A DNA stretch of 64,000 bases, taken from positions 3,100,001 through 3,164,000 of the forward strand of contig JBNJNM010000011.1 of NCBI GenBank assembly GCA_052426225.1, read 5' to 3'. This document shows, piece after piece, positions 6,973 to 44,627 of the stretch. Numbering within the stretch: position 1 is the stretch's first letter; every line of letters starts with the position of its first letter. Under the pieces are notes generated by a model that saw only the letters and a list, made by a program, of their open reading frames with translations, ran no database searches and had not been told where the DNA came from. The translations under genes were made by a program, and so were the position numbers. The stretch is from Zancudomyces culisetae HAW-14-8 (Eukaryota; Fungi; Kickxellomycota).

Positions 6973-9207
6973 ATGATCAAGAAAATGCCGATAGGTTCGC
7001 GATTACAGAAGCAGTATAAGAATCCCTTAAAGCCGGCGAATAAACGGAAAAGGGATGAAAATCACGCAGTGATCGTGAGAAAAAGGGATGCAGATAATAT
7101 AGGACTCACAGAAGGGAAGCGGGTGGATAGTCATAGTCATAGTCATAAAAGCGAGCCCGGATCCTCTAAGCGATTGAAAGGACAGTCAGCAAATGCACGT
7201 AAAAAGGGAGAGAAGGAAAAAAAGAGCGAAACTCAGGAGTATGTACATCCAAAAACTGGGATTCAGGTCAGGGGTAAACATAGAGCAAGGCGGGGTGGAG
7301 GTGTGGATAGGAGAGGAGGTAAAGGTAGGAGTAAAGGTGGCGTGGGAGGAGGAGGTGATGGTGCTAGGGATAGAGTCGGAATACGAGTATCGGATGACAC
7401 TAATGGTGTAGATCATGAGTTAAAAATAGAACATACTCTAGACACGCATGGTGAAAAACGAGATATAAAAGAAGTATCAGAGAAATCAAAAAAGTTGGAA
7501 GGGACAGGTTATGACCTCAGAAACAAGGAAAAATCCCTAGGGGAGCAGAAGGAGGTGTCCGATGCGAATGAAAAGCAGGACAGTGCGAAAAATATAAACG
7601 AACATGTGGATGTGGAAGGAGGGGGGGAGCGCCATCAATTGGAAAAAGCAGGACAGATTATCAGGAATACTGGAGGCCTTGAGAAGGAGGAAGGGAAAAA
7701 AAGAGATAAAGAATGGGATTATGCCATGCATTTACAATTTATAGAAAAAGTCCTGGAGAGGCTAGCCGAACTGAAAAGTACATCGAAAAAATGGTACGAA
7801 AAAACGAAACGCGATGAGTCTATAGAGAACCTTTTGCAGGGCTTTCATGGAACCCGGCGAAATATAGCCGGGGATTCGCTATTTTTATATAAGGAGGAGG
7901 TAGGAATAAATAGCCAGATAGCGGAAAAAAGTAACCTGGTAACCGTGATGGGGCTAATATGTTTTCCTAACCTGTACATGAAAGATGTAAAGGGCAAGTG
8001 GGCGAATGAATATAATAATGAGCTGGCGCAGGCATCACAGAATAGCTCAGCAGAAAATGAATACCAAACGAAAGTGAGGTGGACAACATTTGGTGTGCTA
8101 ATGCTACTAGACTGCCAGCTAGAGTGGCTAGAGCTTGACAAAGCGTTAGTCGGATTAATGGTGGAAATGCTGACATATCTATCCTTATATTCAACAAACA
8201 TTGATATCAATCAGAGAAGAAGTGTGGAGTCTAGTCATCAAACCGACAGCCATTCTGGAAATCAGAGACTTGGGTTCGGATATGCTGAGTCCGTTAACTA
8301 CTTTTTTGAAAGCGGTGACACAAGTTTGTCAAGCATACTCAATGATTCTAATGTTTATAAATATTACACCGACCAGGCTAAAAAGAGAGTCCACAGACTG
8401 TTGGCATTGAAAAATGTCAAGGCTGCCAAGAGTAAATATCATATTGAGAAGTTTCTTTGCGACACTTCTGAATGTCTACTCGAAAAGTTGCTAAACATGA
8501 AGGTTGGCTTGGAAAGCGAACTGTTAATGAAAAATCCGCCATCAAAACCTGTTAAGGAAAAGCTGGGTGGTAGCCAGCTGGCAGCGACACCTGAATCGCA
8601 CTTTGGTGGTGACAAGCAGAGTGTAGGTACTTTACAAAAAGCCTCATCAAGACCAGCTGCTCAACAAAAGAGAGGTACCTCCACTTTGCAGTTATCAGTA
8701 CACAACAGCCAAGATGAGCCCACTATCCCACAGCCAACTGGTTTCTACAGTCAGGATGAGGTTGGGTCTGACATTGAATGTTCGACTGAAAGCGATGAGC
8801 ATGCTGGTAAACCACCCCGCTTGCAAGGAGAAACCAAACCAGAAGCATACCCAGGCGTTGAGGTTCTTATGGAAATAGCTACCGAAACGCATATAAATGA
8901 TGTGGAAAGAAGCGAGGCTTCTAAACTGCGCATTCAAACCATCCTTTCCACCATCCGTACATATCACGGTATCAATCCTTTACGGAAGGGCTGGACAAAA
9001 GAGGAAATTTTGTGCTTGGATGGCTGTGTGGAGATGTATATGCGGCCAGCTTATGCCCTTTTTCTGAACTTGCATGGAGAAAGTGGTGTGTGCTCGCATG
9101 TTTTAAAGGATAGGACTAGCGTTAACTTGAAAGACAAGGTCAGGAACAACGTCCGAGCTCTTGAAAAAGCCGGCGTCGAGCTGGGCCCTTACAGATATTT
9201 TTTGTAA
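6973..9207 (+). CDS. Telobox Myb-domain protein (Tbf1/TRF-like telomere-repeat binding factor)
   Basis: Long ORF, first ATG at 6973. C-terminal WTKEEILCL...LNLHGESG...LKDRTSVNLKDKVRN resembles the Tbf1/TRF telobox (RTxVxLKDKxRN). Basic, low-complexity N-terminus. Confidence 0.7.
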   Translation: MIKKMPIGSRLQKQYKNPLKPANKRKRDENHAVIVRKRDADNIGLTEGKRVDSHSHSHKSEPGSSKRLKGQSANARKKGEKEKKSETQEYVHPKTGIQVRGKHRARRGGGVDRRGGKGRSKGGVGGGGDGARDRVGIRVSDDTNGVDHELKIEHTLDTHGEKRDIKEVSEKSKKLEGTGYDLRNKEKSLGEQKEVSDANEKQDSAKNINEHVDVEGGGERHQLEKAGQIIRNTGGLEKEEGKKRDKEWDYAMHLQFIEKVLERLAELKSTSKKWYEKTKRDESIENLLQGFHGTRRNIAGDSLFLYKEEVGINSQIAEKSNLVTVMGLICFPNLYMKDVKGKWANEYNNELAQASQNSSAENEYQTKVRWTTFGVLMLLDCQLEWLELDKALVGLMVEMLTYLSLYSTNIDINQRRSVESSHQTDSHSGNQRLGFGYAESVNYFFESGDTSLSSILNDSNVYKYYTDQAKKRVHRLLALKNVKAAKSKYHIEKFLCDTSECLLEKLLNMKVGLESELLMKNPPSKPVKEKLGGSQLAATPESHFGGDKQSVGTLQKASSRPAAQQKRGTSTLQLSVHNSQDEPTIPQPTGFYSQDEVGSDIECSTESDEHAGKPPRLQGETKPEAYPGVEVLMEIATETHINDVERSEASKLRIQTILSTIRTYHGINPLRKGWTKEEILCLDGCVEMYMRPAYALFLNLHGESGVCSHVLKDRTSVNLKDKVRNNVRALEKAGVELGPYRYFL

Positions 9208-21445: not shown

Positions 21446-24400
21446 ATGAATGATAAGCGCAGTAGAGAGAATGTCTATGGAAACGAAGGGGGAAGAGGAG
21501 GCGACAATGAGAGGATGAACAACTATGAATTGCTTGAAAGAATTAGACAACAGAGACAACAACAACAACAACAACAACAACAACAGAGTCCTGTCGGGTC
21601 GCTAACGCCACCGCAGCATACACAAAGTAACTCTCAAGGGTATCGCGGAGGAGACGAAAGGGTATTTAACGCCAGGCCGCCACCAATACCAACGCAACTA
21701 TCACAACAAATGCAACAGCCACAAGGGTATGACACGATGGGAGGAAGAAGTGAAGATGCAAGTGCAGTGGGTAGTATAGCTGGTGAAAGGTATCGGCGAT
21801 TAAACCCAAGCGAGGCAGATAGAATATATAACCAGGGACATGGGGGATACGATGAAGGAAGAAGCCAGCAGAGTTATGGGTATAACAATCAACAGCATGA
21901 AATGGATATGTATCAACAAAACCAGCAGAACCAAGGGTACCAAGAGGAGATAGAAATGCATGAAAACACGTATGATGATGGAAGGTATCAATATACCGGG
22001 GGTGATATAGGAGATCATCAGGGGTATTACGAAGGTGATGGGCATTTTGCAAAAAACGAAGAGTATTATGGGAGTGGAATGGGCGAAGAGGGATATTATG
22101 GACAAGGGGACGTTCCCATATTGGGGGGAGGAAAACCACTTCCAGTCCCAATGAGACCAAGGGATGCAGAGAAACGCTCTGAACCAAGTATCCATGATGT
22201 ACAGTTGAGAGTAGCACAACCAGTATCTACACCAGAACTTCAGTCAAATGATCTACTAGAAAAGACGGGAAGAGTGCTGGATCCACGACACATGCCAGAA
22301 GTAGACCCACAATTATCCCAGCTGTATGATATATCTGAAGCACCACCGGTAGATTCACGGCTTTACTCCGCCTATAAAGAACAACGGATGAGACATTTGA
22401 AACAAGTTGAATTGACATCAGGAAATCTAGTTTTGGACTGTCCAGTAGCAGATAAGGTGTTGATGGCGGGAAAATACAAAACAGGGCAAGAGTTCACGCA
22501 CATGAGGTATACTGCATGTACATGTGATCCAAATGAGTTTATGACCGAAAAATATACACTGAGACCAGTAATGTACGGAAGACAGACGGAGATGTTTACA
22601 GTTCTTACAATGTATAACGAAGGGCCAGATCTTTTTGGAAGAACGTTTAAGGCAGTAGTCAAAAATATTACACATTTGCAGACGCGGACACGAAGCAGAA
22701 CATGGGGAGCGGATGCATGGAAAAAGTGTGTAGTATGTGTCGTTGCGGATGGACGTACAAAAGTCAACCGCAAAGTATTAGAAATTCTAGGATGTATGGG
22801 AGTGTACCAAGAGGGGGTAATGCAGAACAGTGTAAGCGGGCGGCCAGTGACAGCACATATCTTTGAATATACAACACAGATATGTATAGATTCTGAAATG
22901 AATTTTCTAGGGCCAGAAAGAGGATATGTTCCCGTGCAAGTGTTGTTCTGTCTTAAAGAAAAAAACGCAAAAAAGATCAACTCACACCGATGGTTCTTCA
23001 ATGCGTTTTCACCACTTTTGCAACCCAACATTTGCGTATTGATTGACGTCGGAACAAAGCCAACTGGGACGTCGATTTATCATTTGTGGAAGGCGTTTGA
23101 CAAGGATGCAAAAGTGGCAGGCGCATGTGGTGAGATTTGTGTTGATACAGGAAACAACAGCTGTGATCTTTGGAATATGCTGGTGGCGGCGCAAAACTTT
23201 GAATACAAGATGTCTAATATTTTGGATAAGCCATTAGAGTCAGTATTAGGATATATCTCGGTGCTTCCAGGAGCGTTTTCGGCATACAGATACAGTGCAC
23301 TGCAAAATTCCGATGCCACATCAGGTCCTCTTCACTCATACTTCAAGGGCGAATTGATGCATTCGGGTGATGGTTCAGCCGGTGGTATCTTTGAGGCAAA
23401 CATGTATTTGGCCGAAGATCGTATTTTGTGTTTCGAATTGGTAACTAAACGCAACTGTAATTATGTGCTCAAGTATGTCAAATCAGCAAAGGCTATGACA
23501 GATGTACCAGACACATTACCTGAGCTGATTTCTCAGCGCCGAAGATGGTTGAACGGATCGTTTTTCGCCATGTTTTATGCAATTGCTCACTGGTATCGTG
23601 TCCTAAACTCCAGCCATCATATTTTCCAACACTTCTTATTCTTCATCGAATTTTTATACCAGGTTGTTAACATGCTGTTCTCCTGGTTCTCGTTGGCCAA
23701 TTTCTACCTGGCGTTTTATTTTTTAGCTCAAAATGTTCAGCTTGCAGACAAGGAAAAAAGGTACAAAAACGATCCGTTTTTCGGTGGAGGAACCGTTGTT
23801 ACCGAAGTCATTCGTATTCTGTATATCATGTCTTTGATGATGATCTTTGTTTTGGCCCTGGGTAATCGACCTCAAGGCTCCAAATTTATCTATGGCTTCG
23901 CCGTCACCCTATTTGCTCTTATTATGATTGTTATGACTTATACAGTTATCTTCTCCATTGTTCGGCAGATTCAATCAACAAACTTCAATGATGGTGCTGT
24001 CTCTCTTATCAAAGACTCATACTTCCGTGATATTGTGATCTCCACCGCTTCTACATATGGTATCTATCTTATATCTTCAATTATATATCTCGAACCTTGG
24101 CACATGGTTACCTCTTTAGTCCAATACTTGTTGTGGATGCCTTCCGCCATCAATATTCTGATGGTATATGCCTTTTGTAACATACACGATGTGTCCTGGG
24201 GAACCAAAGGTGACACCTCTGTATCAAATGATTTGGGTCACGCAAAAGTCTCTACAAAAAAGGATGGTGTTGCTGTGGCCACTGTTAATGTCGCAACCGA
24301 CCAAGCCGACATTAACGCTGTATATGAAACATTTTTATCTAGCCTGCGGCAACCTATTCCAAAAAATGCAGAAAAGGTCAAACGCGATGCTGCTACCAAA

Positions 24401-24652
24401 CGTGACGATGCAAATAAAATGTTCCGTACCAATCTGGTTCTTGTTTGGACTTTTACAAACATTTTACTGGTCTTGATCCTTTCTTCGGCTTGGTTTGCCG
24501 ACCATATCTACGGTTCCGGTTCAGCTACCGCCCAATCCGCAGCTGTTAACCCATACCTTTCATTTATCTTTTGGAGTGTTGCCGCCTTAGCCTTTATCCG
24601 CTTTGTGGGCTCTATCTCTTATATAATTGGCCATTATCTATTTGGTCCCTAA
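21446..24652 (+). CDS. Chitin synthase, division 1 (class I-III type)
   Basis: Motifs TMYNE, DGR, KKINSHRWFF, LIDVGT, QNFEYKMSNILDKPLES, VLPGAFSAYR, LAEDRIL, QRRRW and HDVSWGTKG, plus C-terminal TM helices. Confidence 0.97.
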   Translation: MNDKRSRENVYGNEGGRGGDNERMNNYELLERIRQQRQQQQQQQQQQSPVGSLTPPQHTQSNSQGYRGGDERVFNARPPPIPTQLSQQMQQPQGYDTMGGRSEDASAVGSIAGERYRRLNPSEADRIYNQGHGGYDEGRSQQSYGYNNQQHEMDMYQQNQQNQGYQEEIEMHENTYDDGRYQYTGGDIGDHQGYYEGDGHFAKNEEYYGSGMGEEGYYGQGDVPILGGGKPLPVPMRPRDAEKRSEPSIHDVQLRVAQPVSTPELQSNDLLEKTGRVLDPRHMPEVDPQLSQLYDISEAPPVDSRLYSAYKEQRMRHLKQVELTSGNLVLDCPVADKVLMAGKYKTGQEFTHMRYTACTCDPNEFMTEKYTLRPVMYGRQTEMFTVLTMYNEGPDLFGRTFKAVVKNITHLQTRTRSRTWGADAWKKCVVCVVADGRTKVNRKVLEILGCMGVYQEGVMQNSVSGRPVTAHIFEYTTQICIDSEMNFLGPERGYVPVQVLFCLKEKNAKKINSHRWFFNAFSPLLQPNICVLIDVGTKPTGTSIYHLWKAFDKDAKVAGACGEICVDTGNNSCDLWNMLVAAQNFEYKMSNILDKPLESVLGYISVLPGAFSAYRYSALQNSDATSGPLHSYFKGELMHSGDGSAGGIFEANMYLAEDRILCFELVTKRNCNYVLKYVKSAKAMTDVPDTLPELISQRRRWLNGSFFAMFYAIAHWYRVLNSSHHIFQHFLFFIEFLYQVVNMLFSWFSLANFYLAFYFLAQNVQLADKEKRYKNDPFFGGGTVVTEVIRILYIMSLMMIFVLALGNRPQGSKFIYGFAVTLFALIMIVMTYTVIFSIVRQIQSTNFNDGAVSLIKDSYFRDIVISTASTYGIYLISSIIYLEPWHMVTSLVQYLLWMPSAINILMVYAFCNIHDVSWGTKGDTSVSNDLGHAKVSTKKDGVAVATVNVATDQADINAVYETFLSSLRQPIPKNAEKVKRDAATKRDDANKMFRTNLVLVWTFTNILLVLILSSAWFADHIYGSGSATAQSAAVNPYLSFIFWSVAALAFIRFVGSISYIIGHYLFGP
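21557..21586 (+). repeat. Coding (CAA)9CAG microsatellite (polyQ) in chitin synthase
   Basis: caa x9 followed by cag, encoding Q10. Confidence 0.95.
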
Positions 24653-26537
24653 ACTTTATGACTATCTTTTCACATTTTCTACCTTGATCATTTCACTTTT
24701 AGGTTTAGTTGGTAAAAACATTGACTGTTTTTTTTTTTCTACATGAAGCATACTTTATTACAATTTTTATTATTATTTGTGTGTTTCGTTATTAATACCA
24801 GAGTTGCTCAAAAATGCCAAATGATGATGTGTGATAGTAGGAAGAGGAAGGAAAGACAGATGGATGGGATAGTATATCGTCAATTCAATTCTCAGTCAGT
24901 TTTATTTTTTATCATTTATTTCTACTTGACTGTCTGCATCCTCAAAAACAACTTGACTACATATCCCCATCTTCATAAACTAGCATTCGCGCAACTGCGA
25001 TGTGTGTGTATGTGTGTTTTTTTTTTTTTCAAAAGGTCAGGGGAGCACACATCATTCAATGATGGTATGGTGACAGTAAACTTTTACTCCTTCACCTCCC
25101 CTTTTTTTCACCCGTCTTCTTTATCCTAGTTCTATCTGTATGTCACCCGTTTGAGCAACTACAGGCTCGGATACTCAATAAACTAGAGAAAATGAAGAAA
25201 ATAATGACACTCCACCCATAACTGCGGGAAAAAGCTGCTGACCTTTTTTTTTTTTACCTTACCACTTCACAAATGCAATAACTCATTCTCCCTTTTATGT
25301 TTTAACATCGATTAGTGGAACTATGTCATTATTTATTTACCCATTTATTTGTTGATAGTTTCGTTTAGCAACCACTGGTCGCTATTTTTGGGCTGGGATT
25401 GAAGGGAATTGAATAATGTATGTTATGAAATTAAGCACTAGTTGCATTCGTTTCGCTTTAACTTGCATAAATGTTTGTATAAACAAAACGGATGAGCGAA
25501 TAAAAGCATCAGTGTGTTATGGAAAACCTTACTTGTAATTGGACTCTGGTATCTGGCCTCTGGCCCCTTCTCCCGTTTATTAGCCCTTTTTTCTTGCTAC
25601 GCTTACCCATCTTCATCATTTCCTTTCCCTCTCCCTTTCCCTTTTTTCGATTTTGGTTCAGATTCTCCTTGTACTCGTTCTAGGGCTTAGCAAACAAAAA
25701 AAGGAAAAAGAGAAAAGAAAAAAAGGAATTATACTTTGTGTATTGTATATTGTAATACCACCAATCCAATTTGCGAAGTAGCCGCAAAACAAAAAAAACA
25801 AGTTCAAATTGACAGAAATCTCACTCCCACCCCACCCCCAAGAGCTCCATTACCAGCGATTAACATTTAAAGTTTGCATTGCAAAAGAAAAAGAACCGGG
25901 AAAAGTGGTTATTTGCAAGCTATTCTCTTTCTCCACAAAATGAATAATAGAACACCAAGTGTTTGTGTCATCCTATTCATTTAGTGGGTTCCAAAGCACT
26001 ATTCGCATGTTTTTTTTTATACCATGGTTGAGGGTGAGGGAGAAAGGAAGAGAGGCTTTTTAGATTTTTTTAGATTTTTGTATGTCTACAAATTGTATTT
26101 GTAAAAGCACAGCGAATAAAAGCATGCTGACTCTGACTTGACAAAACAAACCCACAAACTCCTTTATTGATTTCATCTACAATTTAGAAGAGTTTTAGAT
26201 ATTTACGTTACTTTGCTTGATTTTGTTACACATAATCTTCACTTTCTATTAAAGAATATCGATGGAACGATGTTAAGAGAAAAGAAATACTTGGGAAAAT
26301 AGAAAAATAAAAATAAAAGTCACTAATACTTTTGTTGTTGACAGAACAGATAACATATTGGTATCCCGTATCGGCTCATAGCTGTGTTACAGTGCAAATT
26401 TTATAGATAATATTGAATAGAACAAATACTTTACAGTCTATCACTTGGCATAGCGCATATCATTACAAGTTTTCTTTTGTATTTAACACGTCGTTTTCTA
26501 TCAGTAAACGAGAGGAACACATATATTATACGAAGTA

Positions 26538-29500
26538 ATGAGCGTTAAAATGCCGGCTTTGAACTCATCAAACCTCAATATTGTGGACCTGGACGCTGTG
26601 CGGCGCCTCTGCTACAAAGGTAATTTGCCAATAATATTAGAATTATCGCTAGGTTTTGCAATGCTCTTATCTATTGTAAATGTGTGGTATACCCTCCAGA
26701 TTGGTATACAAGCCTTTCCCCCCTCTCTCCTTACTTTTTTTGATCAAAAAAGTATAGGATTTTATTATCAATGTTTGGTCATGGCCTATTTGCTGTACCA
26801 TTGCTTGTACGTATAGAGAGACAGTATTTAGTACAAGTAGATAAAGTACTATGAAGGTTTTGATTTACACAGTGAAATATCACGACTTGGTGTTTTGTTC
26901 AAGCTTGATTCTGTTTTTGAGTCTATGTATAGAAATATATCGATTTTATCCTAAATTATATTTTATTAGGTATTGAAGGAAAAGGTAACATTCGGTCAGT
27001 ATGTTGGAGAGTAAGTTTTCTGTTTTAGCTTTGTGATAATAAGGATACATAGTATTTTGTTTTTTGTTTTTGATTGCTAGGAGTACAAAATCCACTAAAG
27101 AAAAAGCGCTCCACTACAAGTAACCTTAACTATGTGAATTAGATATTATTGGGATATTTGCCTGTGGATAAAAGAGAATGGAAAGTTGAACTGAACAGAA
27201 ACCGGAGTTTCTACTATGTAAGTTTGATATGTGTATTTTTCTACTCCGAGCTTATGCTCGAGCATACAAGATCAAGTGTATCTTTTAAGCGATAACCAAT
27301 TCAAACCATAATAAACCAGTTATTCAATTTCATATTATAGGGATTCATAAAAGAGCTTTATGATGTTCAACACAGTCATGGCACTACTGAGAAAAATCAT
27401 AGGGGCAGCGAAGATAACCGAACTTTGGTGGACGGAAAAGACGTTGAAGCAATAGTAAGTAAACTTTAATCAGCTTTCATTTATTTTACTTTTTTTGTAT
27501 CCTTTTTCCTGATTCCAAACATCCCCTTCGTTAGATTTTGGCGATATCTTCACCAATATATACATCAGCCTAATGCATATTTTGGCAGAGTTTACAATAC
27601 GATAATAAACAATACCGTTTTACTAGGCAAACAAAAAGAGGTATGAGAGCAAAATACTCATCCAGATACTGAGGGATGTGAAACGTACGCTACCACGCGA
27701 CGATTTCTTGCAAAACAGGCTTTCTGAAGAGAGGAGTAAAGAAAAATGTATGGATAGCGATGAAGATGGAGGCAGCACAAGCAGTAGCAGAAGCGGAAGC
27801 GTAGAGATTTTTGATTCTATTGAAGAGTTTCATGACAGTTTAGGATTTAAACTCAAAGGTAAGCTGATACAACAAACCTAGTATCTTGTGCTTTATTCCA
27901 CACAAAATATACCTTATATTTTCTTTATGCTTGTTTTTACTATTTATAAAAAAAAATGGTATGAAATAGAAAACCAAAAGATTGGAAGGATGGCTAACTC
28001 TTCAAGCCTTATGACAGATTTAAAGTGTTTTGCATTCTACGAAAAATACTTGAACTTGGCAGATGGAGAATCGTTTCACATAGCTGACGCGTTTATCGAA
28101 ACACCACCCCAAACCCACATGGACATTGTAGCTCGGATATTATATATATACGCAATACTGAACAAAGGCGTAGGGTATATACAGGGAATGAACGAAATGA
28201 TTATTCCGTTTTATTATGTGTTATATACGCAGGCCCCGACAGTGGACGATAAAGCAGCAGCAGAGGCTGACGCATTCTTTCTGCTTTTTAAAATATTAAG
28301 CGGGCAGACACTTAATAATTTTATTGGAGAGATGGATGAAACGGCTGATGATGATATTGGGAAGGAAAAGGCAGAAATCCGCAACATGAAGGGCCATGTT
28401 AATTATGGAATGTCAATATATGGTAATGGTAGTGGACCTGAATCATCCCCAGATTCAGATACGCTCACAAGCATACAAGATGGTATAGCAAACAAAATTG
28501 CAATGCTTTTTGGCACAAACAAGGAGGATGGGAAGGATGTTGAAAGTCTAAGCAAGGAATCAGGTGGCATTCAGAGACAACTAAATAGGTGGTGGAATGA
28601 AGTTGTATCTAAAGTTGATCCAAGACTCTGGAGGCACATGAGGTATTTGGGGTACAAACCAGAGGATTTTGCATTGAGATGGATGCTTGTGTGGTGCGCT
28701 AGAGAGTTTCCTCTAGACGAAGTCATAAAACTATGGGACAGTCTAATTGCAGAAAAGTCATTTGAAATTGTAAAAAAGAATACTGAAATCAAGAAAGAGG
28801 CTGAGGCTCCTTCAGAAATAAAGGGTATGGTGGAGCAGCAAGAAGGAAATAAAACCAAAAACGAGGTAAAAAGTGAAGATAGTGGTGCTAGTGGCATGAG
28901 AAACCCAAATACAAGCTCTCAGGCACAGATTTCCCAGGATAACAGACCAAACAGGTTAGTAAGGAAGGGTGACGCTGGAGGAGGAGGGGGAGGAAGAGGA
29001 GGTGGAGGTGGTGGTATGTTCTCGTTTATGAGTTTTATGAACATTCAAAGCATGATGTACACTGACGCTTCGGCATCCGCTAGACCAAAGCCAAAAGAAA
29101 ATGTACAGTACATTGTCAAGGATATCGATTTGCGAAAGTCGCGTAGGGAAAGCCTAGATAAAAACGTGATAATTGTCAAAAATCTGGATGATTTTAGCAA
29201 ATCCCAGGAGATAATTGTTAAGCCTCTCGCTACTGAAAATAACACAATAACCAACGAGAACGGTATTAATAAAGAGGGTCTAGGAAAAGGGGCCAGTAAC
29301 GAGATTCGGTTGAAGGATGGACCAAGCTTTTTGATGTACTTTATCACCGCAATGCTCGTGGTACTAAGAGAGCCAATTCTAAAATCGGATTTTTCAGGTG
29401 GGATGTTAGCATTACAAACCTTCAGCCAAGAAAATACGACTATTATCATAGAGGATTTACTCAATGTCGCGAACCAAATCAAAAACATATTTGCGAGATA

Positions 29501-31794: not shown

Positions 31795-34331
31795 ATGGTG
31801 TACATAACAGCAGAGCAATTTGAGCAAGGATATAAAAAGATAATCGAAGGTTCGGCCAATGCAATAAGATCGGGACTAGGGGTGTGTAGTGTATTATTTT
31901 TAGTGGCTAATGACACTGATGCGTTGTGTGGGTTGCGAATACTAACAGTGAGTGCTAGAGTTCATTACTAGTAGTTTATTATATCTAGCTCGAAGAAGTT
32001 ATACTTTTTAATATGTATTCAAAGCGAAGAAAACAAAAAAAAATGTTTAAATGCATAGACTCTGCTGAGACAAGATTTCATAAGTTACAAAATTGTTCCA
32101 GTGAGATCCGTTCGTGACATTGTCAGCTGTAATGAAAACTTGATTGTTGGCAACGAAGAGGTAACCAGTATTAGTACTTTGAGGTATATTAGTGACTTTT
32201 TTACTTTTAATTTTTTTTTGCTTAAAATGTAACGCTTCCTCTTATAAACAACGAATACGAAATAGCTGCAAACAATCGTGATGATTAACTGTGGCGGATC
32301 TATAGACATTCAAGAAAAGATTGAAATACGGGAGAATGTTACAGTTATAATCATAGACAACCATAGACCATACAATTTGTATAATATTTACTGGAATGAA
32401 AACGTAAGAAACAAACTTTGTATATTGTTTTTAACAGAGTACTAATAACATGACAATAAATTGAAATAGGTTCTAGTATTTGATGACGGTGATCTAGACG
32501 AAGAAGAAAAACTTAAAACAGCATTTAATTATCTAGAGGTAACCACTAGGATATCATTCATTGGTATATATATGTATAAATCAGATACTTACGGAGGATA
32601 GTTTTAAAAACTTCGTGTTGATACCCAATAACACGGGAAAAATGCATCCAAAGTTGCTTTGAGAGGATGTAAAAATTAAAGAAAGCATGTGTAACCAAAA
32701 ACTAGTTTAACGATCAAGAAGAAGCCGAGAATGGGGCTCAAGAGGGGGAGGGGGAGGGGGAGGAAGAGTTTGATGGAGAGGATAGGCATACCAGGAAAAA
32801 GCTCAAAGATACAAATGAAATAGTAAGTACGAGCAAAATACTGTACAAGTATTAGGGGGAGGGGTACGAGATTCATTTAGTGATAAAAAATATATTTTTA
32901 GGCAGAAGACTTCATAAAACAACAGAAACAAAGGAGTGAGCGAAGAAAGGAACGGGATGAAGCACAAGCGATAATAGCGGAGTACTATTCGCAGGGGCAG
33001 TATTATGGCCAATCGGCGGCCATAACTGCCTACCAAATTTTGGAGCAGATGGGAAAACCTCAAGGCATGGATACGGTATGGTGGGCCATACTAGGGCTAA
33101 CTACACAGTATATCAGCGAGCAAATAGATGAAGAGGGGTACCAATTGGTAGTAAATAGTATCTCGGATACTGTAGCACAACTAAACGACTCTTCGGTTCC
33201 AGGTAGCGGTAACAACAGCGGCAATGGTGAGCAAATAGCTGTTGATTTATCGACATCATCAAAGCTGATAATGAATTCCAAACAACCCACCTGTTCAATC
33301 CAACCTAGCGAGGAATTTAGATTTTTTATGTTGCGACACTGGTCACTTGAAAATTCCATGCAATATTCATCGTTTATTGTTAGTCGTTTAGGTACATGGT
33401 CAGCGCGAGGAAAATCGGTATTTCGCTTGGTGATCGCGAAACTTGGTTTAGCAATTTCTGAGATCCAGCAATCGTATACACATCTTGATCCAAAGCTTAA
33501 AAGCGAGCTTCCTGTGCGATGGGATCGTGTTTCCAGCGACTACAATCTGGAAAACGCCATGTTTAATAGTTTTGTCCGCACTTATGGCTGGAAGATGCCG
33601 CCCATTAGCGCTGCTGATCATGTATGTGTTTCAAACGCACTCCTGATCGACTCTACTGTTGTGGCGGATTGGAAGGTGGCATTTTACAAAGCATACGACT
33701 GCTTGGCGAATCTAAATGTTCTTCATACTGGTCTCTCTTGTGCATTGAAAACACAACAGTCACTTGTGGACCTTGCATGTTCCATGCTCGATCAAAAGCT
33801 TGTAAAAACGCTATCCAAATTTCGCCTGGCTGTCATTAACCTTCCGTTTTCGTCTACTTCTACATCTTCTCTTTTATCATCTGAAAGTCATCTGATGCTG
33901 ATTCAATTAGGAAACTTGCTTATTGATGCACTACGTGTAAGTAAAACTTCTAATCTTATCATAAACTCGACAATCTGCATTTCATACTTTATTAATCGAA
34001 ACTAATATTTCAAAAATAACATGTACTATAATAGAATCACGGAAATCCAGCTCATGCCAAACTCCCGTTTATTCTCGCTTATTATGATCCGCAAAGCTTA
34101 GCATACACGGTGTTTGGTTTAACCCCTCCAGAGTATCATGCCTCTGCTCAGCTACCCCCATCTACCTCGACTTATTCTGGGGATTTAAGAAATAAGTTTG
34201 GACTCATATTTGAGCTTTCTGCCACTGACTGTGGTGCAGAGATTACAAACTCTTATTTTGATACATGTATAGTTTCCATCACTGAATCTAAATTTAAAAC
34301 TTTTATTGATAAATTGCGCAAGCATTTATAA
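31795..34331 (+). CDS. CDC45: DNA replication initiation factor Cdc45; 7 exons
   Basis: Exons 31795-31947, 32059-32160, 32266-32403, 32470-32538, 32706-32822, 32902-33936, 34035-34331, all phase 0. Motifs DTDALCGLRIL, YKIVPV, INCGG, IDNHRP, LVFDDG, WWAILGLT, FFMLRHWSLENSM, RNKFG..F. Confidence 0.93.
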
Positions 34332-36267
34332 AAACATACTGTCTTTTTACAATGGTCAATGTCTTAATGAATGTATACCACTTTTTTCCTAATAAAAAAT
34401 AAGTTATTTCAAGATTTATCATTATCACACTTTTTTTTGAGCAACTCGGGTTTGTGATTATACTGTAGGTGCAGTAAGTGACGGAAGAAGGAGGGGTGGG
34501 GATAAATGGTTTAAACCTATACACTGCTATAGTACGCTTCACACGTTTCTACAGGATGAATGTCCGCATAACTATACATTTCACGCGCTTTTTCTGTGTC
34601 TGTATACAAACTCGCTATTAATGCCATCATGCTACAATACATGTGTATACACTTTTTTATATTTTTTTCACGATTTTGTACCAAATAATTGCTAGGACAG
34701 CTTTTCCAGAAAAGATCCATATTTGAACGTGTAACTACTTTTCGGGCTAACTGGATCATGTCCTGTTTGCAAATTTGTCAATGCTTTAGCTACGACTCCA
34801 TTCGCCTACAAAAACTATTCTAGCTAATAAAAATGACTTGATAAAAAGTGTAACCATTAATATATCTTTTATTGGCCCGATAAACAAGCGATATGTCAAA
34901 TTTGCACTACTTTTTCTTTCCCAAATCAACTCTGAATTGATAACGATTTTTGGATGGTGCTAGCCAAAAAAGAATTCCAGGCACATTGAGAATATGATCG
35001 ACTTGTTGGAACAATTATTGCATACAGCTTAGTGTTATATTGGCTAAAGAACAATACAGATTACAACTTATCTGGTATACAAAAGATAGAAAGAATACAG
35101 TGACTTATCCGTGTACACATAAGAACTACGTATAAGGCAGTACTAGAACATTGTTGTACCAGATAAATGTTATATTTTGAAGACAGCTTTAAAACTTTTT
35201 GTCTCCTCTTTGATGCCAGTATTATCTCTCTCACATACTCGTAGAAGGATGGGCTCAAAGGTCTGTGTTCATACAGACATGATGTAATATAGTGCTGTTT
35301 TACCAAGCGCGCAGTAGATTAAACTTTAAAAAAACAGTGTGCTGAGAGCAAATATCGACGATAACTAATTGGTTTAGATAAGCCAAGTATCTGTTATACT
35401 AGGTGGGGGGGAATGTTGCAGGCGTAGTATGACTCAAGATAATTGCAGAGCACAAGAGATCATTTTTAGTTTTTTAATTTTTGTTTTACTTTTTCACAAG
35501 TGGTGGGATAGGCTAGATATCACAAAGAGCAGTAGTTCCCCGAATTTGTCACAAGCCAATCCCCCTCCCCTCTCTGAAATTTGAGCATCTTTATCTTTCT
35601 TATTTAAAAGAACTGATAACATTAATCAAATCCCCAGCTTGGATGAGAAAAAAAATTTTCAAACGAAAAAAAAAAAACACGAGCAATGAAACAGATGCGT
35701 ATTTCAAGCACTTACACCAAAAACCGAGCCAGTAATTAGCTGGATTTTATCAATGTACCTGTTTGAACACAATTTATTGATTGCTGCTCTTCCCAGTGCA
35801 GGCTGTGAGGATGAATGAAAAGACAAAAAAAAAATAATCGAGAAAAAGCAGACGGACGAAAAAAGTGGAATAAAATAAAGTAAAATAAAATAGAATTTTA
35901 GGTAATTTTGAGAAACGAATAAAGAGGGAGGGGTGGTAAAGGAGCTGGAAAAAAAAAAGTGTTACAAATCTGCTATAGGCTGAAGCGAGAAAAGTATTAC
36001 ATCTTAAAATCTAGTGGAGCTTTTGAAAGTTGTGAGGAGATTGTTAGTTTAATTGATTTGGAGATTAGCAATTAGCCTCAAATGATATTTAGAAATTGCA
36101 AAATGTTTTAAAGCGGATAAAAAATATATATATGCTGTGGAGACAAAAAAAATTTTAAAGACAATATACGCTTTTAATTCAAATATTAATTATATTGGCA
36201 CAGTATTTGTTGATATACTAATTTGAAAACAATATTGGAATTCCAGTAAGGGTTTGGTATAAAAGAG

Positions 36268-38794
36268 ATGTTTTCCAAGGCTTCAGTAAATTCAGCAATC
36301 AAGGTAAGAATAGCATAACAAGACGGACAAAAGAAATAAGCGGGTGTTTAGATGTGCACAAGATGTGGACACCAAAAGTAACAAAAAACTATTAATTCAA
36401 TATAGAAGAGTGGTGTATTGGGATTGCGCAATGGCGTAGTCGGCCAGAAGGGCTTTGCAACAATACCCCAACAGGTTTCGATGTCGAGACTTGAGAAGAA
36501 CAAGTTCATTAACTATAAAAAAATCGATGAAAATATTGCAACTGTACGCAAGAGGTTAGTTACTAGCATTTATCTAATTAAATAACCCATCTCAAACATC
36601 TATAAAACACGAAAAAAATAGACTGGGAAGACCTTTGGCCTTGTCCGAAAAGATCGTTTATGGTCACTTGGATGATGCAGCAAATCAAGATATAGTTAGA
36701 GGAGAATCATACCTGAAGTTGAGACCAGACAGAGTGGTGTGCCAGGATGCAACAGCACAAATGGCAATCCTCCAGTTTATGTCAGCAGGAATGCCAGAGG
36801 TAGCAGTTCCATCTTCAGTGCACTGCGATCACTTGATTCAAGCCAAGGTTAATGGCATAGAGGATCTAAAGGTAGCAAAGGATGTCAACGGAGAAGTATA
36901 CGACTTCTTGCAGACAGCATGCGCGAAATACGGATTGGGATTCTGGAAGCCAGGTTCAGGAATCATCCATCAGATTGTAATAGAAAACTATGCATTCCCA
37001 GGAGCCTTGATCATTGGAACAGACTCACACACACCAAATGCCGGAGGATTGGGTGCCGTGGCAGTCGGAGTAGGAGGAGCTGATGCAGTAGACGTTATGG
37101 CAGGAATTCCATGGGAACTCAAATGCCCCAAGACAATTGGAGTCAAACTTACAGGTAAGTTGCAAGGATGGGCATCACCAAAGGATGTGATTTTGGAAGT
37201 TGCAGGTATCTTGACAGTTAAGGGAGGAACTGGAGCCATCGTCGAATACTTTGGACCAGGAGTTGATGGTATTTCAGCCACAGGTATGGGAACCATCTGT
37301 AACATGGGAGCTGAAATTGGAGCAACTACATCTATGTTCCCATACACCGAAAGTATGGACAGATATTTGAGAGCAACTAGCAGAGCAGCAATTGCTGATG
37401 CATCCAGGGCATTCTCCCACCACTTGACACCTGATGAGGGTCACCAATACGACCAGGTGATTGAAATCGACTTGTCCAAGTTGGAGCCAAGAATCAACGG
37501 ACCATTCACACCCGACTTGATGACACCAATTTCCAAGATGAAGGAAACAGCAATCAAGAACAACTGGCCAGAAAAGATGTCCGTTGGTCTGATTGGATCA
37601 TGCACAAACAGTTCATACGAAGACATGACCCGTGCCGCTTCATTGGCTCGCCAGGCCTTGGATGCTGGCTTGAAGGCCAAGTCTGGATTCACAATCACAC
37701 CAGGATCAGAACAAGTAAGAGCCACCACTGAGCGTGATGGATTGTTGGAGACCTTCCGTGAAGCCGGAGGTGTTGTTTTGGCCAACGCTTGTGGACCATG
37801 TATCGGTCAATGGGACCGTAGTGATGTTGAAAAGGGAACACCAAACACCATTGTAACCTCATACAACCGTAACTTCACTGGCAGAAACGATGGAAACCCA
37901 GCCACACACGCCTTTGTAGCATCCCCAGAAATTGTCACTGCTATGGTGTTCGGAGGCTCCTTGCACTTCAACCCTCTCACTGACTCTCTCGACACCCCAT
38001 CCGGAAAGCCATTCAAGTTCACACCACCAGCTGGTGAGGAATTGCCCAGCAAAGGATTTGACTTGGGTGAAGATACCTACCAAGCACCACCAGCACTCGA
38101 AGCTCGCTCTTCAGTGAACGTAAAGGTCAGCCCAACATCAAACAGATTGCAGCTTCTTGAGCCATTCGCCAAATGGTCTGGAAAGGACTACACCAACGCT
38201 GCCGTCTTGATCAAGACCAAGGGCAAATGTACTACTGACCACATCTCCATGGCTGGTCCTTGGCTCAAATTCAGAGGTCACCTTGACAACATCTCCAACA
38301 ACATGTTGATTGGTGCCATCAACGCTGAAAACGGTGAGGCAAACAAGGTCCGCAACCAGCTGACCAATAAGTGGGATGCCGTTCCTGCAACTGCCCGCTA
38401 CTACAAGGCCCAAGGATTGCCTTGGGTTGTTATTGGTGACGAGAACTACGGTGAAGGCTCATCTCGTGAGCATGCCGCTCTTGAAGTCCGCCACCTTGGT
38501 GGTGTAGCTGTCCTTGTCAAATCCTTTGCTCGTATCCACGAAACCAATCTCAAGAAGCAAGGTGTTCTGCCTCTTACCTTCGCCAACCCAGCCGATTATG
38601 AATTGATTCGCCCTGATGACCGCATTGATATTGTCGGCCTTGAGTCTAACTTCAAGCCAGGCCAACAACTCACCATCCGCCTCAACCGCAAGGATGGTAG
38701 CAAACCTGTTGAATTCAAAGTCAACCATACCTTCAACGAAAACCAAATTGAATGGTTCAAGGCTGGTTCTGCTCTTAACAAGATGTCACAATAA
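36268..38794 (+). CDS. ACO1: Mitochondrial aconitate hydratase; 3 exons
   Basis: Exons 36268-36303, 36406-36554, 36622-38794. Presequence-like N-terminus. Motifs [57 protein letters not shown]. Confidence 0.97.
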
Positions 38795-39405
38795 TAGCAA
38801 ACATTTTATTTAGTTTATCTTCTATTTTACTCATTTCGATATATTCCTCTTCGCTTTTGTGGTCGTATCCAAATAAATGTAGTATTCCATGGATCAGTAG
38901 TTTGTTTGTTATGTCAATCATGTTTGCTCTTGTCCCTTCGGCGTGCTTGATTTTGGCGTGCTCTGGACTTATGTACATGTTTCCTAAATCTTTAATCTCT
39001 AGTATATCTTTTGTCTGCTGAATCTGTCGCGGGCTTGTAAACTATGCAATTTTCAAAACAAAAAATTTCTTTACAAGTGTTGCAGTAATTTTTCATCTCT
39101 AATCATTTGTTAAATATCATTCATACCACACCTCACCTGTCTCTCTATCGCCTCCGTCCGAACATATAGTGAATTTATGGAATGTTTAAACTTACATCAT
39201 TAAATCTAAACGACAAAATATCCGTGGGACTAGCATTATCCTTTGTATAGTAAGCGGAACGAATATATGCAATTTCGTCATTGGTTGTGAATTTTACACC
39301 AACCGAGTATTCTTCTAGTCCTAGTTCCTTCAGAATCATGGAAATGTTGTGTCGAATATACCGTTTCGGGATAAATCTTCCGCTGGAATTAAAAACCTTG
39401 ATCAT
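38775..39405 (-). CDS. YBEY: Endoribonuclease YbeY (UPF0054); 2 exons
   Basis: Exons 39405-39196 and 39041-38775 (GTAAGT...CATAG, phase 0), 158 aa. Motifs [15 protein letters not shown] and the H-x3-H-x5-H zinc motif [11 protein letters not shown], followed by MSKIE. Confidence 0.9.
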
Positions 39406-40486
39406 TATCTTCTTTTATGTGTCTTGGTTTATTTCAAGTGTTACAATCGCCGTATAGAACTGGAAAAATATCCAAATCCCTTGTGTACTAATACTTTTGA
39501 ATAAAAGTTTATTTTTTGTTAATTTTTGTGTATTTAGATTAAATTTTTTGGAGCGTGTACATGGAAAAAAAAATGTCGAAAGTTGATCCAAGAATTTAGG
39601 ATCTAGCGTACTTTAATTTTTTGAAATGGCAAGTAGTTGAGGCATGTATAAGTGTATAGCATTTATTGATACAATTTGATTTATGGGACCATAAACCAAT
39701 ACCTTTGAGGGTAATTGGTAAAAAGTCAAAGAATATCACTCAAACGTAGACAGTAACTAAACAGTACTACATTTCTTACGGCCCTGATCAGCTATTATTA
39801 TTCTATTACATTTTTTTTGTGGCTAAATGGCAGCAGGTGTAACTGAACAATACAGGTTCGAAAAGCAAGGGTTCAAAATTATTTGTAGGTGCAGGTATTT
39901 TGCAAATTCTATGCTCTCGTATCTATAAAGAATAGGGACAAAATATGGAAATGAAATATACACAAGTTATTGAGGATAGATCAGGGTATACATGTGAATT
40001 GTTTGTGAGCCAGTAGGAGAAATGAACAAGGGATATATAACCTTTTGTGAACCCTTAAGCAGTTCTTATTTATTGCCTAGATTAGCCTTTAGATGTATTA
40101 GAGGAGGAAATAAATGGGCTAAGGACAGTACGGTTCGCATGGAGGAGGGTTGGGGAGGGGAGGGGGAAATGTCATAAGCTGGTTTTAATTGGAGTGAGCT
40201 GATGGTACTACATAATATATAAACACTTTTTACTTTATCTTGTTTTATTCTGCTATAAAGAAAAATCGGTGGATTTTGTTGGTGGTCAGAACACTATAAA
40301 CGGGTTTTAAATGAGAACACATTACCAGCCAATAAAAATAAGGAAAATCTTGTGCCCAAAAAAAGAAAAGAAAACAAAGGGACCTTTAAAAATGGTGCAA
40401 AGGGGATAAGTATAGTGTGGACAATTTATTCTGGTTTTAGTAGTTAACGAATGGGGGGGAAAAGTAGAATAAATCCAACTGAATTT

Positions 40487-40600
40487 CAAATCAAATCAAA
40501 TCAAATCAAGTCAAATTTAGCGCCGAAATCAACGCAAACGCAAACACAAACAAAAACAAAAACAATGGCAAAAGCAAAAGCAAAAATAAAGATAAAAATA
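40487..40600 (+). repeat. Degenerate penta/hexanucleotide low-complexity array
   Basis: (tcaaa)n, then aacgca/aacaca/aacaaa and agcaaa/aataaa units. Confidence 0.7.
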
Positions 40601-41802
40601 TTAAGCCAGCGAATAAAAAGAAACCATCTAATAGGATGTCTATAAATCCCAAGTTTATTCAATCCTCACATTTTGACGCCTATGCAGCCTTGCTCGGCTT
40701 TATTTTCCCAAGCTAGTACAACTTGGGATAATTCCAATTGAATATTTGTGGATAGAGTATTATATAAAAGCAAACATAAAAGAAGCGGGGATTTAGTAAT
40801 AAAAATAAACAAATCAGTACAAAATACAGGCGTCGTATGCTTTGGGTATTAGTTCTAATGGTATAGGTCTTATTTTGTGCTGGCTATAGGGCAGTATTTT
40901 GGTTATGACCACAGTTTTTGTGCCAGAAAGGAAAAAAAAAATTAAATTGCTAGATGGGGTTATGTATATTGGTTCCTTAAAACTCATCATGATTTACGGC
41001 CTTCACCAGTGTTTTTTTCTAATTCCGCCCCTCCCCTCCTCATACTTTCTGGTGTCTCAAATACCGATATTCTGCCTTAGCCCAGGCTACATAAAAACAA
41101 CACTGCATCTAGTGACTATTTCGAGATTTGTTTGTATCTCTTAGCATATATGTGTTTCCTTCGCTGCTCTTTTTGGCTACTTTCATAAAAAGCCCATTTA
41201 GTGAAAAAACAAAACCCTGTCTTTCAGGTGGGGTTGTATTTTTGTACAAAAACCTTGCAACTAATGAAAAAAAAATTTTTTACTAACGATTACTCAAACA
41301 AGCGAAAACAAAAATAAAAATAAAAATAAAAATAAAATAAAAGTAAAAGTAAAAATCAAATAATAAACAGAAATTGTGGTGGTTAACCACTCGTCTTTTC
41401 CTTTGAAAATCAAAATTGTTTCCCAGTTCCTAACATTTTACACCATTTCCCTTTTCTTTTTTTTTAATTACTGCATTTGTTTCTGATTTATTTACCATTT
41501 ATAATAGATATTTTTCTTGTTATTTATGTATTGAAGCATGGTGGTTTTATTGACAGATAAAGATAGAATTTAATCGACAAAATTACATATTAATAAATCT
41601 GGAAAGTATATTTTAATTTATTTTATACTCTCTTAAAAGATTTTGTTTCTTCAAGTATAATTCCAAGTCTAGAATTTGGTTAAAGTATTTTTTTTGCGGA
41701 ACTAAAAATAAGCAATAAAGGTAAGCTACATTGGGTAGAAACCACCTAAAACCACAGATTAGATAGCCGTAAAAGTAAAATTGAAAACATAGTAGTGAAG
41801 CA

Positions 41803-43108
41803 ATGGAAGCGAGCAATCAAAAAAAGAAGCTACAAGGGTATGTAGGCTTTGCCAATCTCCCAAACCAAGTTCACCGCAAATCTATTAAGAGAGGTTTCAC
41901 CTTCACACTCATGGTAGTAGGTAAGAGAATAATGTTAATAACACCGTCTGGGTCTAATACTTTGAGAAACACAAAATAACAGCTACTGATGAAAATATGA
42001 AATAGGTGAGGCAGGAATAGGAAAATCGACACTGATCAACACTTTGTTTGAAACAAAAATCTTCCCAATAAAGGAGGAAACAGTCGTAGATGCGCAAACA
42101 GGAGTTGAGATAACATCAATGGGTGCAGAAATACAGGAAGGAGGAGTCAAGCTGCGGTTGACAGTGGTGGATACTCCAGGGTTCGGCAACAGTATCAACA
42201 ACGAGGAAAACTGGAAGCCAATTTTGGAGAACATAGAGTCAAGGTTCGATGCGTTTTTGGGACAGGAAAACCGAGTAATCAAGAACAAGATAACAGACAA
42301 TCGAATTGATGCGTTGATATATTTCATCAAACCAACAGGTCATTCGCTCAGAGCCATTGATATCGAATTCATGAAGCGACTGCACACCAAAGTTAATCTT
42401 ATTCCTGTAATCCCAAAGTCTGACACCTTGACCCAGGATGAGCTTACAGGTTTCAAATCTCGAGTTATGGCCGATATCAACTACCACCAAATTCAAATCT
42501 TTAAGCCAAACTGGGATCCTCTTGACGATGCAGAAACTGTTGCTGACTGCAAGGACATGCTTGCCAAGATCCCATTTGCTGTTATAGGCAGCGACAAGAG
42601 CTATGAAAACGATTCTGGAAAGACAGTTCGTGGACGCAAGTATCCTTGGGGACTTATTGAGGTCGATAATGAATCCCATAATGACTTTGTCAAGCTCCGT
42701 CGCATGTTGATTTGTACTCACATGAACGAATTGAAAGATGCCACTGATACTGTTCTCTACGAGAACCATCGCTCACAGAAACTCTTCACCATGGGGCATG
42801 TTCAAGACAATACTGTATTCCGCGAATACAACCCAGCTGCTTATTTGGAGGAGGAGCGCAGACTCCATGATCTTAAGATGCAGAAAATGGAGGCAGAAAT
42901 GAACGCTGTCTTCCAACAAAAGGTCCAGGAGAAAGAAACAAAACTCAAGCAATCAGAAGAAGAACTTTATGCCCGCCACAAGGAAATGAAGGTGAATCTA
43001 GAAAAACAACGCATTGAGTTGGAAGAAAAGAAGAAGAAGCTCATGTCTACAAACCGACCTGTGACACCGATTGATAAAAAGCAAAAGAGAGGCTTGTTCT
43101 CGTTATAA
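41803..43108 (+). CDS. Septin, Cdc3/AspB (group 2) type; 2 exons
   Basis: Exons 41803-41920 and 42006-43108. [17 protein letters not shown]1 [16 protein letters not shown]4 IPKSD, GRKYPWG and a C-terminal coiled coil. Confidence 0.95.
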
Positions 43109-43988
43109 ACAAATCTTTACTCCAGCTTTCATCACTCTCTGTAGTATCCACAAGCCCCCCCTCCCTTTATTCTTTCTTTCATTCTATTTTTTTTCCTATT
43201 TCCTATTTCTTGTTTTCTTAACACCCTTTCTTTCTCCTATCTCCATTTTCTTTATGCTTTGAATTACTCCACTTTATCTTTATTCTTCTTTAACTATTGA
43301 GCTTATCCCTCAATCAATGGCCAAATAAAGCAAATAAATGGATTTTTATTACCACTAACACTATTTCATCCGTTCATCACATAATATAAAAATCTAATTT
43401 GCATCCACGGTGTCATGATCAATTATTGCATTTTAGTTTTAAGCACGAGGGTTTAGAGTTTATTCCTACTAGCTCTGGCGCATTTAATTTGCTATGTCCT
43501 GGCACTTGAAAATTGTACCTGACAACCCTCTTGAGTTCTAGCACAAACAATTCTTGAGACTGACACGATCTCAACCTCTATGTTTTATCCCTTTTCTTCT
43601 CCGCACACACTCGTCATTCTGCACCGAAAAAGTATTTTGAATGCCCAAAACTATTCCAAAACTCAAAACTCAAATGTCATAACCATCACCTTTTCAGCCA
43701 TAGAAGCTCGGTGCTGAATTAACATGCCAGTTTACACTACCCCCTTCTACTCAAAGCCAGTTAGTTGTACACCCAGCGTTTTTTTTTTGCTTTTGATCAA
43801 GAAAAATTAGTGATCTTTTATTTACATGGCCATAAATGCATGTTTACAAAACCACTACATTAGGCGATAACATTAAGTTCTAGCCACTCTGCTAACCAAC
43901 CAGCATCTAAAAATAACAATATTAGAATAATAAAAAAAGCAAAAGCTAGATAGTAAACTAAAAATAGAGTGACCCCCCCCCCCCCCTA

Positions 43989-44627
43989 CTAGCAGTATGG
44001 CAAATACTTTAGATAAGTCTGCCCTGCTGGGATCTGTGCAAGGGACATTGACCAATAAGGACCCACCTTTCCCACACCAACGGCATTTACTTTGGGATTA
44101 AGCAGGTTTGCATTGTGTACAGGCGAATTTTTCCAAGCCTGGATTAGCTCTTTTGCACTTTTTTGCCCGTACGCAACATTCTCAGCATAAGAGGACCATT
44201 TAATATTTGCAACTGTGGATAGCCGATTCCCAAGGTTACCATTTGGATCATCGTGCGTCATTGTAGCAATGGAATTTTGGTATACCGAATGTGCTTTGGC
44301 ATCTTCATTGAGACTAAGTAGCACATACAACACCCCCAAATTATTCTGCGTTCTATACTTGTTGGTCTCACATACCAAAGCCCACAATTCTTTCTGAGTA
44401 TCTCCATCAACTGCACCCGACTGCCTCTTGTGATTACTATTACTTCCCCCCCTATCACCACCTATATCAACGTTTCCATACCCATTTGTCTTTTCTGCAA
44501 ACGCACTTGCCTCGCTCTCCCTCTTTCTCAGTCCCCGATGCACTACGCTATCCACCTCGTATATCAAACTCGACGCCATTGAGATGGCGAATACTAGACC
44601 CAATCTTGGTATTCTTGATATTCTCAT
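43989..44627 (-). CDS. Secreted CAP/SCP-domain protein (YkwD-like)
   Basis: Signal-like N-terminus and dibasic sites (RKR, KR). CAP motifs TNKYR, AKAHS..., MTH, ENVAYGQ, WKNSPVHNANLL...VGVG. Confidence 0.85.
   Translation of the reverse strand: MRISRIPRLGLVFAISMASSLIYEVDSVVHRGLRKRESEASAFAEKTNGYGNVDIGGDRGGSNSNHKRQSGAVDGDTQKELWALVCETNKYRTQNNLGVLYVLLSLNEDAKAHSVYQNSIATMTHDDPNGNLGNRLSTVANIKWSSYAENVAYGQKSAKELIQAWKNSPVHNANLLNPKVNAVGVGKVGPYWSMSLAQIPAGQTYLKYLPYC

Follow-up and report, generated by a model that had tools for sequence, protein, structure and literature searches.

A mitochondrial aconitase gene lies on contig C11 of Zancudomyces culisetae, a member of the Harpellales and a gut symbiont of mosquito larvae. 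We analysed it within a 64-kb stretch, C11:3,100,001–3,164,000 (the window; coordinates are window positions unless a contig is named). The predicted protein carries the Pfam Aconitase and Aconitase_C domains and matches Z. culisetae aconitase at 99%. A sequence-only reading of this DNA had counted codons in one exon and described a reversal from A-ending to C- or T-ending codons along the gene. Its counts were reproduced exactly: in 36623–37141, GGA encodes 16/20 glycines, ACA 5/5 threonines and AGA 4/4 arginines, while in 38222–38794 GGA encodes 1/16 glycines, ACA 0/8 threonines and CGY 9/10 arginines. Ala, Pro and Leu shift in the same way, as it had stated, and so does Val. Purines at fourfold-degenerate sites fall from 60/83 in the early segment to 10/90 in the late one (Fisher p=4e-17), and the trend along the whole gene has z=-7.4 by within-gene permutation. 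The locus is organised as follows.

36268–38794, plus strand: mitochondrial aconitase gene, 785 aa (HMM gene model)
36268–36303, 36406–36554 and 36622–38794, plus strand: predicted aconitase exons (HMM gene model)
35600–37400, plus strand: purine-rich arm (purine fraction 0.62 in upstream DNA and 0.68 in intron 1; fourfold purine 0.57–0.73 in the 5′ exon part)
37400–38200, no strand assigned: switch zone (location estimates 37558 and ~38160)
38200–39000, plus strand: pyrimidine-rich arm (fourfold purine 0.06–0.13 in the last exon part; 0.36 in the 3′ flank)

The aconitase switch, at 37.5–38.2 kb, is wider than that of most genes. Amino-acid replacements in aconitase showed no clear direction (12:11, 8:5, 4:7). 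A chimeric locus, raised earlier as a possible refutation, was rejected: in an independent assembly from a second strain (GCA_001969505.1), 45.6 kb of the window align colinearly at ~99%, the whole aconitase gene included. The interval between aconitase and the septin gene, 39600–41500, is without a called gene; it is purine-rich (0.58), then mixed or pyrimidine-rich, and carries short A-rich tandem repeats.

The same trend had been claimed for several other genes of the window. It held for chitin synthase (z=-8.3), CDC45 (z=-3.4), septin (z=-3.1) and the cyclin (z=-2.6); for bZIP (z=-0.6) and NAM9 (z=-1.3) it was not significant. The septin 3′ flank at 43110–43300 is as pyrimidine-rich as described.

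21446–24652, plus strand: chitin synthase, sharp switch at ~23310, fourfold purine 0.77 to 0.32
6985–9207, plus strand: unnamed 741-codon gene, switch at ~8225–8340, 0.69 to 0.37
2999–4414, minus strand: cyclin gene, switch at ~3670, sense purine 0.58 to 0.29
41803–43300, plus strand: septin gene and 3′ flank, switch at ~42343, 0.72 to 0.30, 3′ flank purine fraction 0.21
43989–44627, minus strand: CAP-family gene, convergent neighbour with mirrored bias, sense purine 0.62 at both ends
31795–34331, plus strand: CDC45, weaker and gradual fall, 0.64 to 0.40

To the window we added 200 kb (C11:2.0–2.2 Mb) and 30 small loci from the source assembly, which comprises 27.1 Mb in 25 contigs. A self-trained HMM gene finder gave 81 complete predicted models; database searches used single-exon reference sequences, and spliced models served the computations alone. 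Scanning 264 kb of C11 for purine-to-pyrimidine switches (z>4), we found 16, against at most 0.03 per shuffled sequence. Fourteen of the 16 lie well inside gene bodies and two at convergent junctions. Their density is about one per 10–15 kb of gene-dense DNA, and many successive centres are 9–16 kb apart. Fourfold purine fraction is about 0.70–0.72 before a centre and 0.30 after it (0.70/0.30 on held-out sites). A step model fitted better than a line in 13/16 switch genes, with step widths mostly below resolution. Examples are TUP1 (0.91 to 0.03), MDM31 (0.85 to 0.14), a BMS1-like gene (0.78 to 0.25) and RLI1 (0.76 to 0.24). The skewed arms hold for 1.5–3 kb from the centre, fade by ~3 kb and return to 0.50. 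Where centres are more than 9 kb apart, the middle half of the interval is flat (fourfold purine 0.48–0.54) and not linear.

The metagene of predicted gene models, which might have been flat, runs from a fourfold purine fraction of 0.61–0.63 at the 5′ end to 0.44 at the 3′ end. AT skew (+0.29 to -0.08) and GC skew (about +0.2 to -0.16) change in parallel at nearly constant GC content. GC-content or expression-type codon bias was rejected as a cause, fourfold GC being flat at 0.34–0.37. Slopes were negative in 59/81 genes, significantly so in 20 and significantly positive in one, and the effect is concentrated in about one-third of long genes, many ordinary long genes being flat. The suggestion that more than a few genes are affected was borne out by switches on C7, C8, C12, C15, C16 and C21, on both strands; the switches are real and widespread in the genome. 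Among the long genes sampled on C11, 14/15 strong switchers are on the plus strand vs 16/26 of the others (p=0.03); minus-strand hosts are common on other contigs.

All eight fourfold families and the Ser, Arg and Leu boxes shift together at switches. Before the switch, Glu and Gly occur at roughly double their frequency after it, and Pro, His and Ser are commoner after it, a difference partly confounded by domain composition. Twofold sites of the 3′ arm are also enriched in C (0.56, compared with 0.37 in flat genes), and the 5′ arm shows no mirror excess of G (0.42 vs 0.39). GC3 rises by 0.04 at centres; at 200 bp the paired p is 0.002 and the rise exceeds the 95th percentile of the null, while p ranges over 0.002–0.06 depending on window, and the GC trend taken as a per-gene slope has p=0.27. 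We found no shared motif or k-mer at 13 centres, and no CpG peak at centres. Retrotransposon-like genes and genes for apparently secreted proteins lack the skew; a cluster of retrotransposon-like ORFs at C11:2.000–2.031 Mb (L031–L034) is likewise without it. Switch hosts include members of the INCENP, RasGEF, TRS120 and MDM31 families, presumed low-expression regulators, so expression level would be no obvious driver.

The pattern does not stop at gene boundaries. On the plus strand, convergent junctions show no jump (mean -0.03, n=21, p=0.47) and extreme purine fractions are carried across them (0.11/0.20, 0.26/0.14); a convergent neighbour can therefore stay purine-rich to its own stop codon (0.86–0.92). 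Plus-strand jumps are +0.18 at divergent and +0.12 at tandem junctions, and tandem genes just downstream are pyrimidine-rich from their own start (0.34–0.36). In L034–L050, often just 40–110 bp separate convergent genes, whose 3′ UTRs must therefore extend into the coding sequence next door. Non-coding purine fraction tracks that of the adjacent exon, with r=0.39 for introns, r=0.53 for 5′ flanks and r=0.63 for 3′ flanks. The skew of UTRs, introns and intergenic DNA has the same sign, with only about one-third to one-half of the amplitude at fourfold sites, and drops within ~200 bp past the stop codon in intergenic DNA. The skew as a whole extends over 3 kb where a gene reads toward the centre and over 1.5 kb where it reads away. 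This unequal reach, the drop after the stop and the unmirrored C of the 3′ arm indicate that transcription direction matters. The skew is an antisymmetric field on the DNA strands around point centres, not a per-gene codon gradient: each strand has A>T and G>C for 1.5–3 kb 5′ of the centre and is pyrimidine-rich 3′ of it, whatever the gene orientation. The codon-usage reversal is a by-product of this field.

Between the two strains, 289 SNPs showed no local excess near centres, a comparison of low power. Transversions were rarer among fourfold SNPs than non-coding ones (3/29 vs 59/201, p=0.04). Few fourfold transversions and no SNP excess would argue against ongoing hypermutation and favour biased fixation or repair. 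Half of the intron SNPs between the strains (16/32) are transversions, as against 25% of intergenic SNPs and 10% of fourfold ones; most fall within the introns of a TBC gene (26480–28000). Comparison with related fungi, proposed by the sequence-only reading, found no comparable flip in ~35 sampled ORFs of relatives. The aconitases of Smittium simulii, S. mucronatum, Furculomyces, Coemansia and Dispira use C/T-ending codons throughout (fourfold purine 0.07–0.35), and TUP1 is flat, without a switch, in both Furculomyces and S. simulii. The trend in genes of Harpellales relatives is slightly opposite; one Ramicandelaber gene shows a gradual fall (z=-5.5), another an increase (z=+4.5). In this small gene sample, the trait looks specific to the Zancudomyces lineage.

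The earlier statement that no standard feature class explains such a reversal is so far upheld, as we found no published description in a literature search that covered few subscription papers, and the Z. culisetae assembly paper nowhere mentions skew (PMC12611240). Gene skews already described in fungi are less pronounced and run the opposite way. The GC skew that McLean and Tirosh reported in 2011 for genes of unicellular fungi also changes sign along the gene and involves fourfold sites, amino acids and UTRs, but it has C at the 5′ end and G at the 3′ end, a flat AT skew and a gradual course tied to gene ends (PMC3315797); in Z. culisetae, G and A lie 5′ and C and T 3′, and the change is step-like and crosses into neighbours. 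Candida albicans centromeres show an abrupt, large GC-skew reversal (74%) that is gone within ~3 kb and whose cause is disputed; these jumps are intergenic, occur once per chromosome and have AT skew opposite to GC skew (PMC2924309; PMC3459929), whereas ours are mostly intragenic, number 16 in 264 kb of one contig and have the two skews in parallel. Replication skew domains (bacterial ori/ter, human jumps, yeast origins) share the strand-symmetric reversals and the irrelevance of gene orientation, but between origins their skew stays constant or linear across distances from tens of kb up to Mb, and in yeast it is A and C that the leading strand gains (PMC3459929; PMC11874978); here plateaus are short, the skew between centres is flat at zero and the axis is purine/pyrimidine. 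Codon ramps and tRNA adaptation act on the coding sense strand alone, unlike a skew that extends to opposite-strand genes and non-coding DNA. A purine-pyrimidine flip has reportedly been seen at mouse hotspots by Smagulova et al. in 2011. The human meiotic double-strand-break hotspots of Hinch et al. 2023 share the point centre, the mirror asymmetry over ~2 kb and the 3′-overhang orientation (PMC7615360). They differ in that the asymmetry emerges only statistically, as an excess of rare variants at PRDM9 sites that are short-lived, where Z. culisetae comes close to fixation in single genes.

An abrupt flip flanked by short symmetric arms, with no skew farther out, is the shape expected of a process that starts at a point, treats the strands unequally and is limited in distance. 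We favour, with a probability of roughly 0.4, the reading that the centres are long-lived hotspots of programmed double-strand breaks (Spo11-type recombination) within gene bodies. On both sides, 5′-to-3′ resection from a break at the centre would expose the strand lying 5′ of the break as single-stranded DNA. Damage specific to one strand, error-prone fill-in or a bias in heteroduplex repair could act over the resected tract, and purines would become fixed on the 3′ overhang strand and pyrimidines on the resynthesised strand; the agent may be mutation bias or conversion bias. The geometry and scale of resection (1–3 kb) match the arms and narrow centres of the switches, and the small GC3 peak would agree with the prediction of GC-biased conversion, although the per-gene GC slope is non-significant. 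The genome encodes meiotic machinery: a Spo11 domain, two full RecA-family recombinases and six MutS homologues. Against this reading, fungal and plant meiotic breaks usually lie in promoters, not gene bodies, and the lower non-coding amplitude, orientation-dependent reach, unmirrored C of the 3′ arm and lack of a motif also count against it. In human hotspots the forward strand is single-stranded to the left of the break and mutation is strand-asymmetric over ~2 kb, with a C>N, A>N spectrum (PMC7615360), which accounts for G>C here but not for A>T.

The sign of the skew alone cannot separate breaks from replication or transcription. Replication would explain the strand symmetry, the indifference of sign to gene orientation and the many successive centres 9–16 kb apart if the centres were narrow, efficient origins with a pyrimidine-rich nascent leading strand, or if they were the points at which forks launched from intergenic DNA beside active genes run into each other. 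Mammalian initiation zones do border transcription start and end sites (PMC11874978), and comparable local jumps occur at Candida centromere-origins (PMC2924309). We nevertheless consider replication unlikely. A constant or linear skew is expected between centres, where we see the middle half flat at 0.48–0.54; steps of <500 bp would need implausibly fixed termination; and the sites where skew switches back up are not symmetric sources. GC-skew jumps at yeast origins are ~9% and decay over ~20 kb, compared with ~90% and 3 kb here, a contrast already used to argue against replication at Candida centromeres (PMC3459929). The intergenic placement of origins or break sites in the sequence-only reading also fails, the sharp feature being the purine-to-pyrimidine switch inside gene bodies and not an intergenic jump; shifted to centres within genes, that hypothesis may still hold. 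Two-ended transcription, in which the non-template strands of sense and of antisense or convergent read-through transcription become purine-rich and the zones meet inside the gene, is no more probable than replication. It would fit the longer reach in genes reading toward the centre, the end of the 3′ flank effect ~200 bp past the stop and the unaffected retrotransposon-like and secreted-protein genes. Relative position within the own gene was the best simple predictor, with a cross-validated gain of 134 log-likelihood units; a symmetric source at the promoter gained 100, and both this model and a between-promoter one were rejected for their poorer fit. Yet antisense would have to equal sense transcription in strength, as the two sides of TUP1 require, and meet it in a sharp step; tandem downstream neighbours are pyrimidine-rich from their own start, and many ordinary long genes are flat.

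Selection on physical behaviour, be it of DNA or of an RNA:DNA hybrid (through R-loop stability, nucleosome directionality or termination signals), around a functional chromatin site appears less probable again. The amplitude at fourfold sites, which exceeds that of non-coding DNA where bulk amplitude is similar, and the deficit of fourfold transversion polymorphism (p=0.04) speak for it; the relatives' sampled orthologues lack the trait, no motif was found at centres, and the compensation that selection on bulk composition should produce, positive in raw form, mostly vanished once codon family and neighbouring base were controlled. An mRNA-level programme, by 5′–3′ complementarity or position-specific use of tRNA isoacceptors, we regard as very improbable: it draws only on the raw codon switch in single genes, and convergent neighbours keep their purines to the stop codon while amino-acid usage and non-coding DNA shift jointly with the Ser, Arg and Leu boxes and every one of the eight fourfold families. 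Both forms had been put forward by the sequence-only reading. We reject pairing of mRNA ends, native duplex energies equalling those of synonymous shuffles in five genes, and likewise tRNA programming, given the mirror bias in opposite-strand neighbours and the non-coding DNA that tracks the skew.

The repair genes present comprise, besides the MutS homologues, three HhH-GPD genes, UNG, RNase H2 and B-family polymerases; loss of a repair gene as the cause is not evident. A Y-family polymerase has a single weak match in the genome (C6:429372–429854) and MutL a single match (C21:596466). It is possible that Rev1/Pol kappa or MutL paralogues have been lost, or were missed owing to introns.

In the nuclear genomes of eukaryotes, strand skew usually amounts to a few percent and shows up in averages only; in Z. 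culisetae the skew nears fixation in single genes such as TUP1. We class the pattern as a new, extreme form of strand-asymmetry footprint whose mechanism is inferred. It could, though we hold this to be doubtful, reflect a lineage-specific chromosomal process with ~1,500–2,500 stable intragenic centres (by extrapolation from a density of one per 10–16 kb) that overrides codon selection and shifts amino-acid usage. Such a process might consist of gene-body-targeted breaks with transversion-biased repair, or of dispersed centromere- or origin-like sites, and would drive fixation much as GC-biased gene conversion does, but by acting on strand. Should breaks prove responsible, the switches would form a fossil hotspot map in gene bodies and record a strand-specific drive on coding sequence. 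Because the centres can be mapped from sequence alone and the fungus is culturable, the origin of large local skew jumps is directly testable. In practice, the skew will distort analyses of codon bias, dS and gene finding in Z. culisetae.

Further features were seen outside the window. At C11:2153196–2153591 (L046), a 351-codon gene contains a divergent H3-like fold and is a CENP-A candidate. On C24, positions 2579–114837 hold five equal-scoring ORFs for B-family DNA polymerase, each a 701-aa frame, spaced 26,032 bp apart, two on the plus and three on the minus strand. The array resembles a concatemer in which a 26-kb plasmid- or virus-like unit is repeated in tandem and inverted copies.
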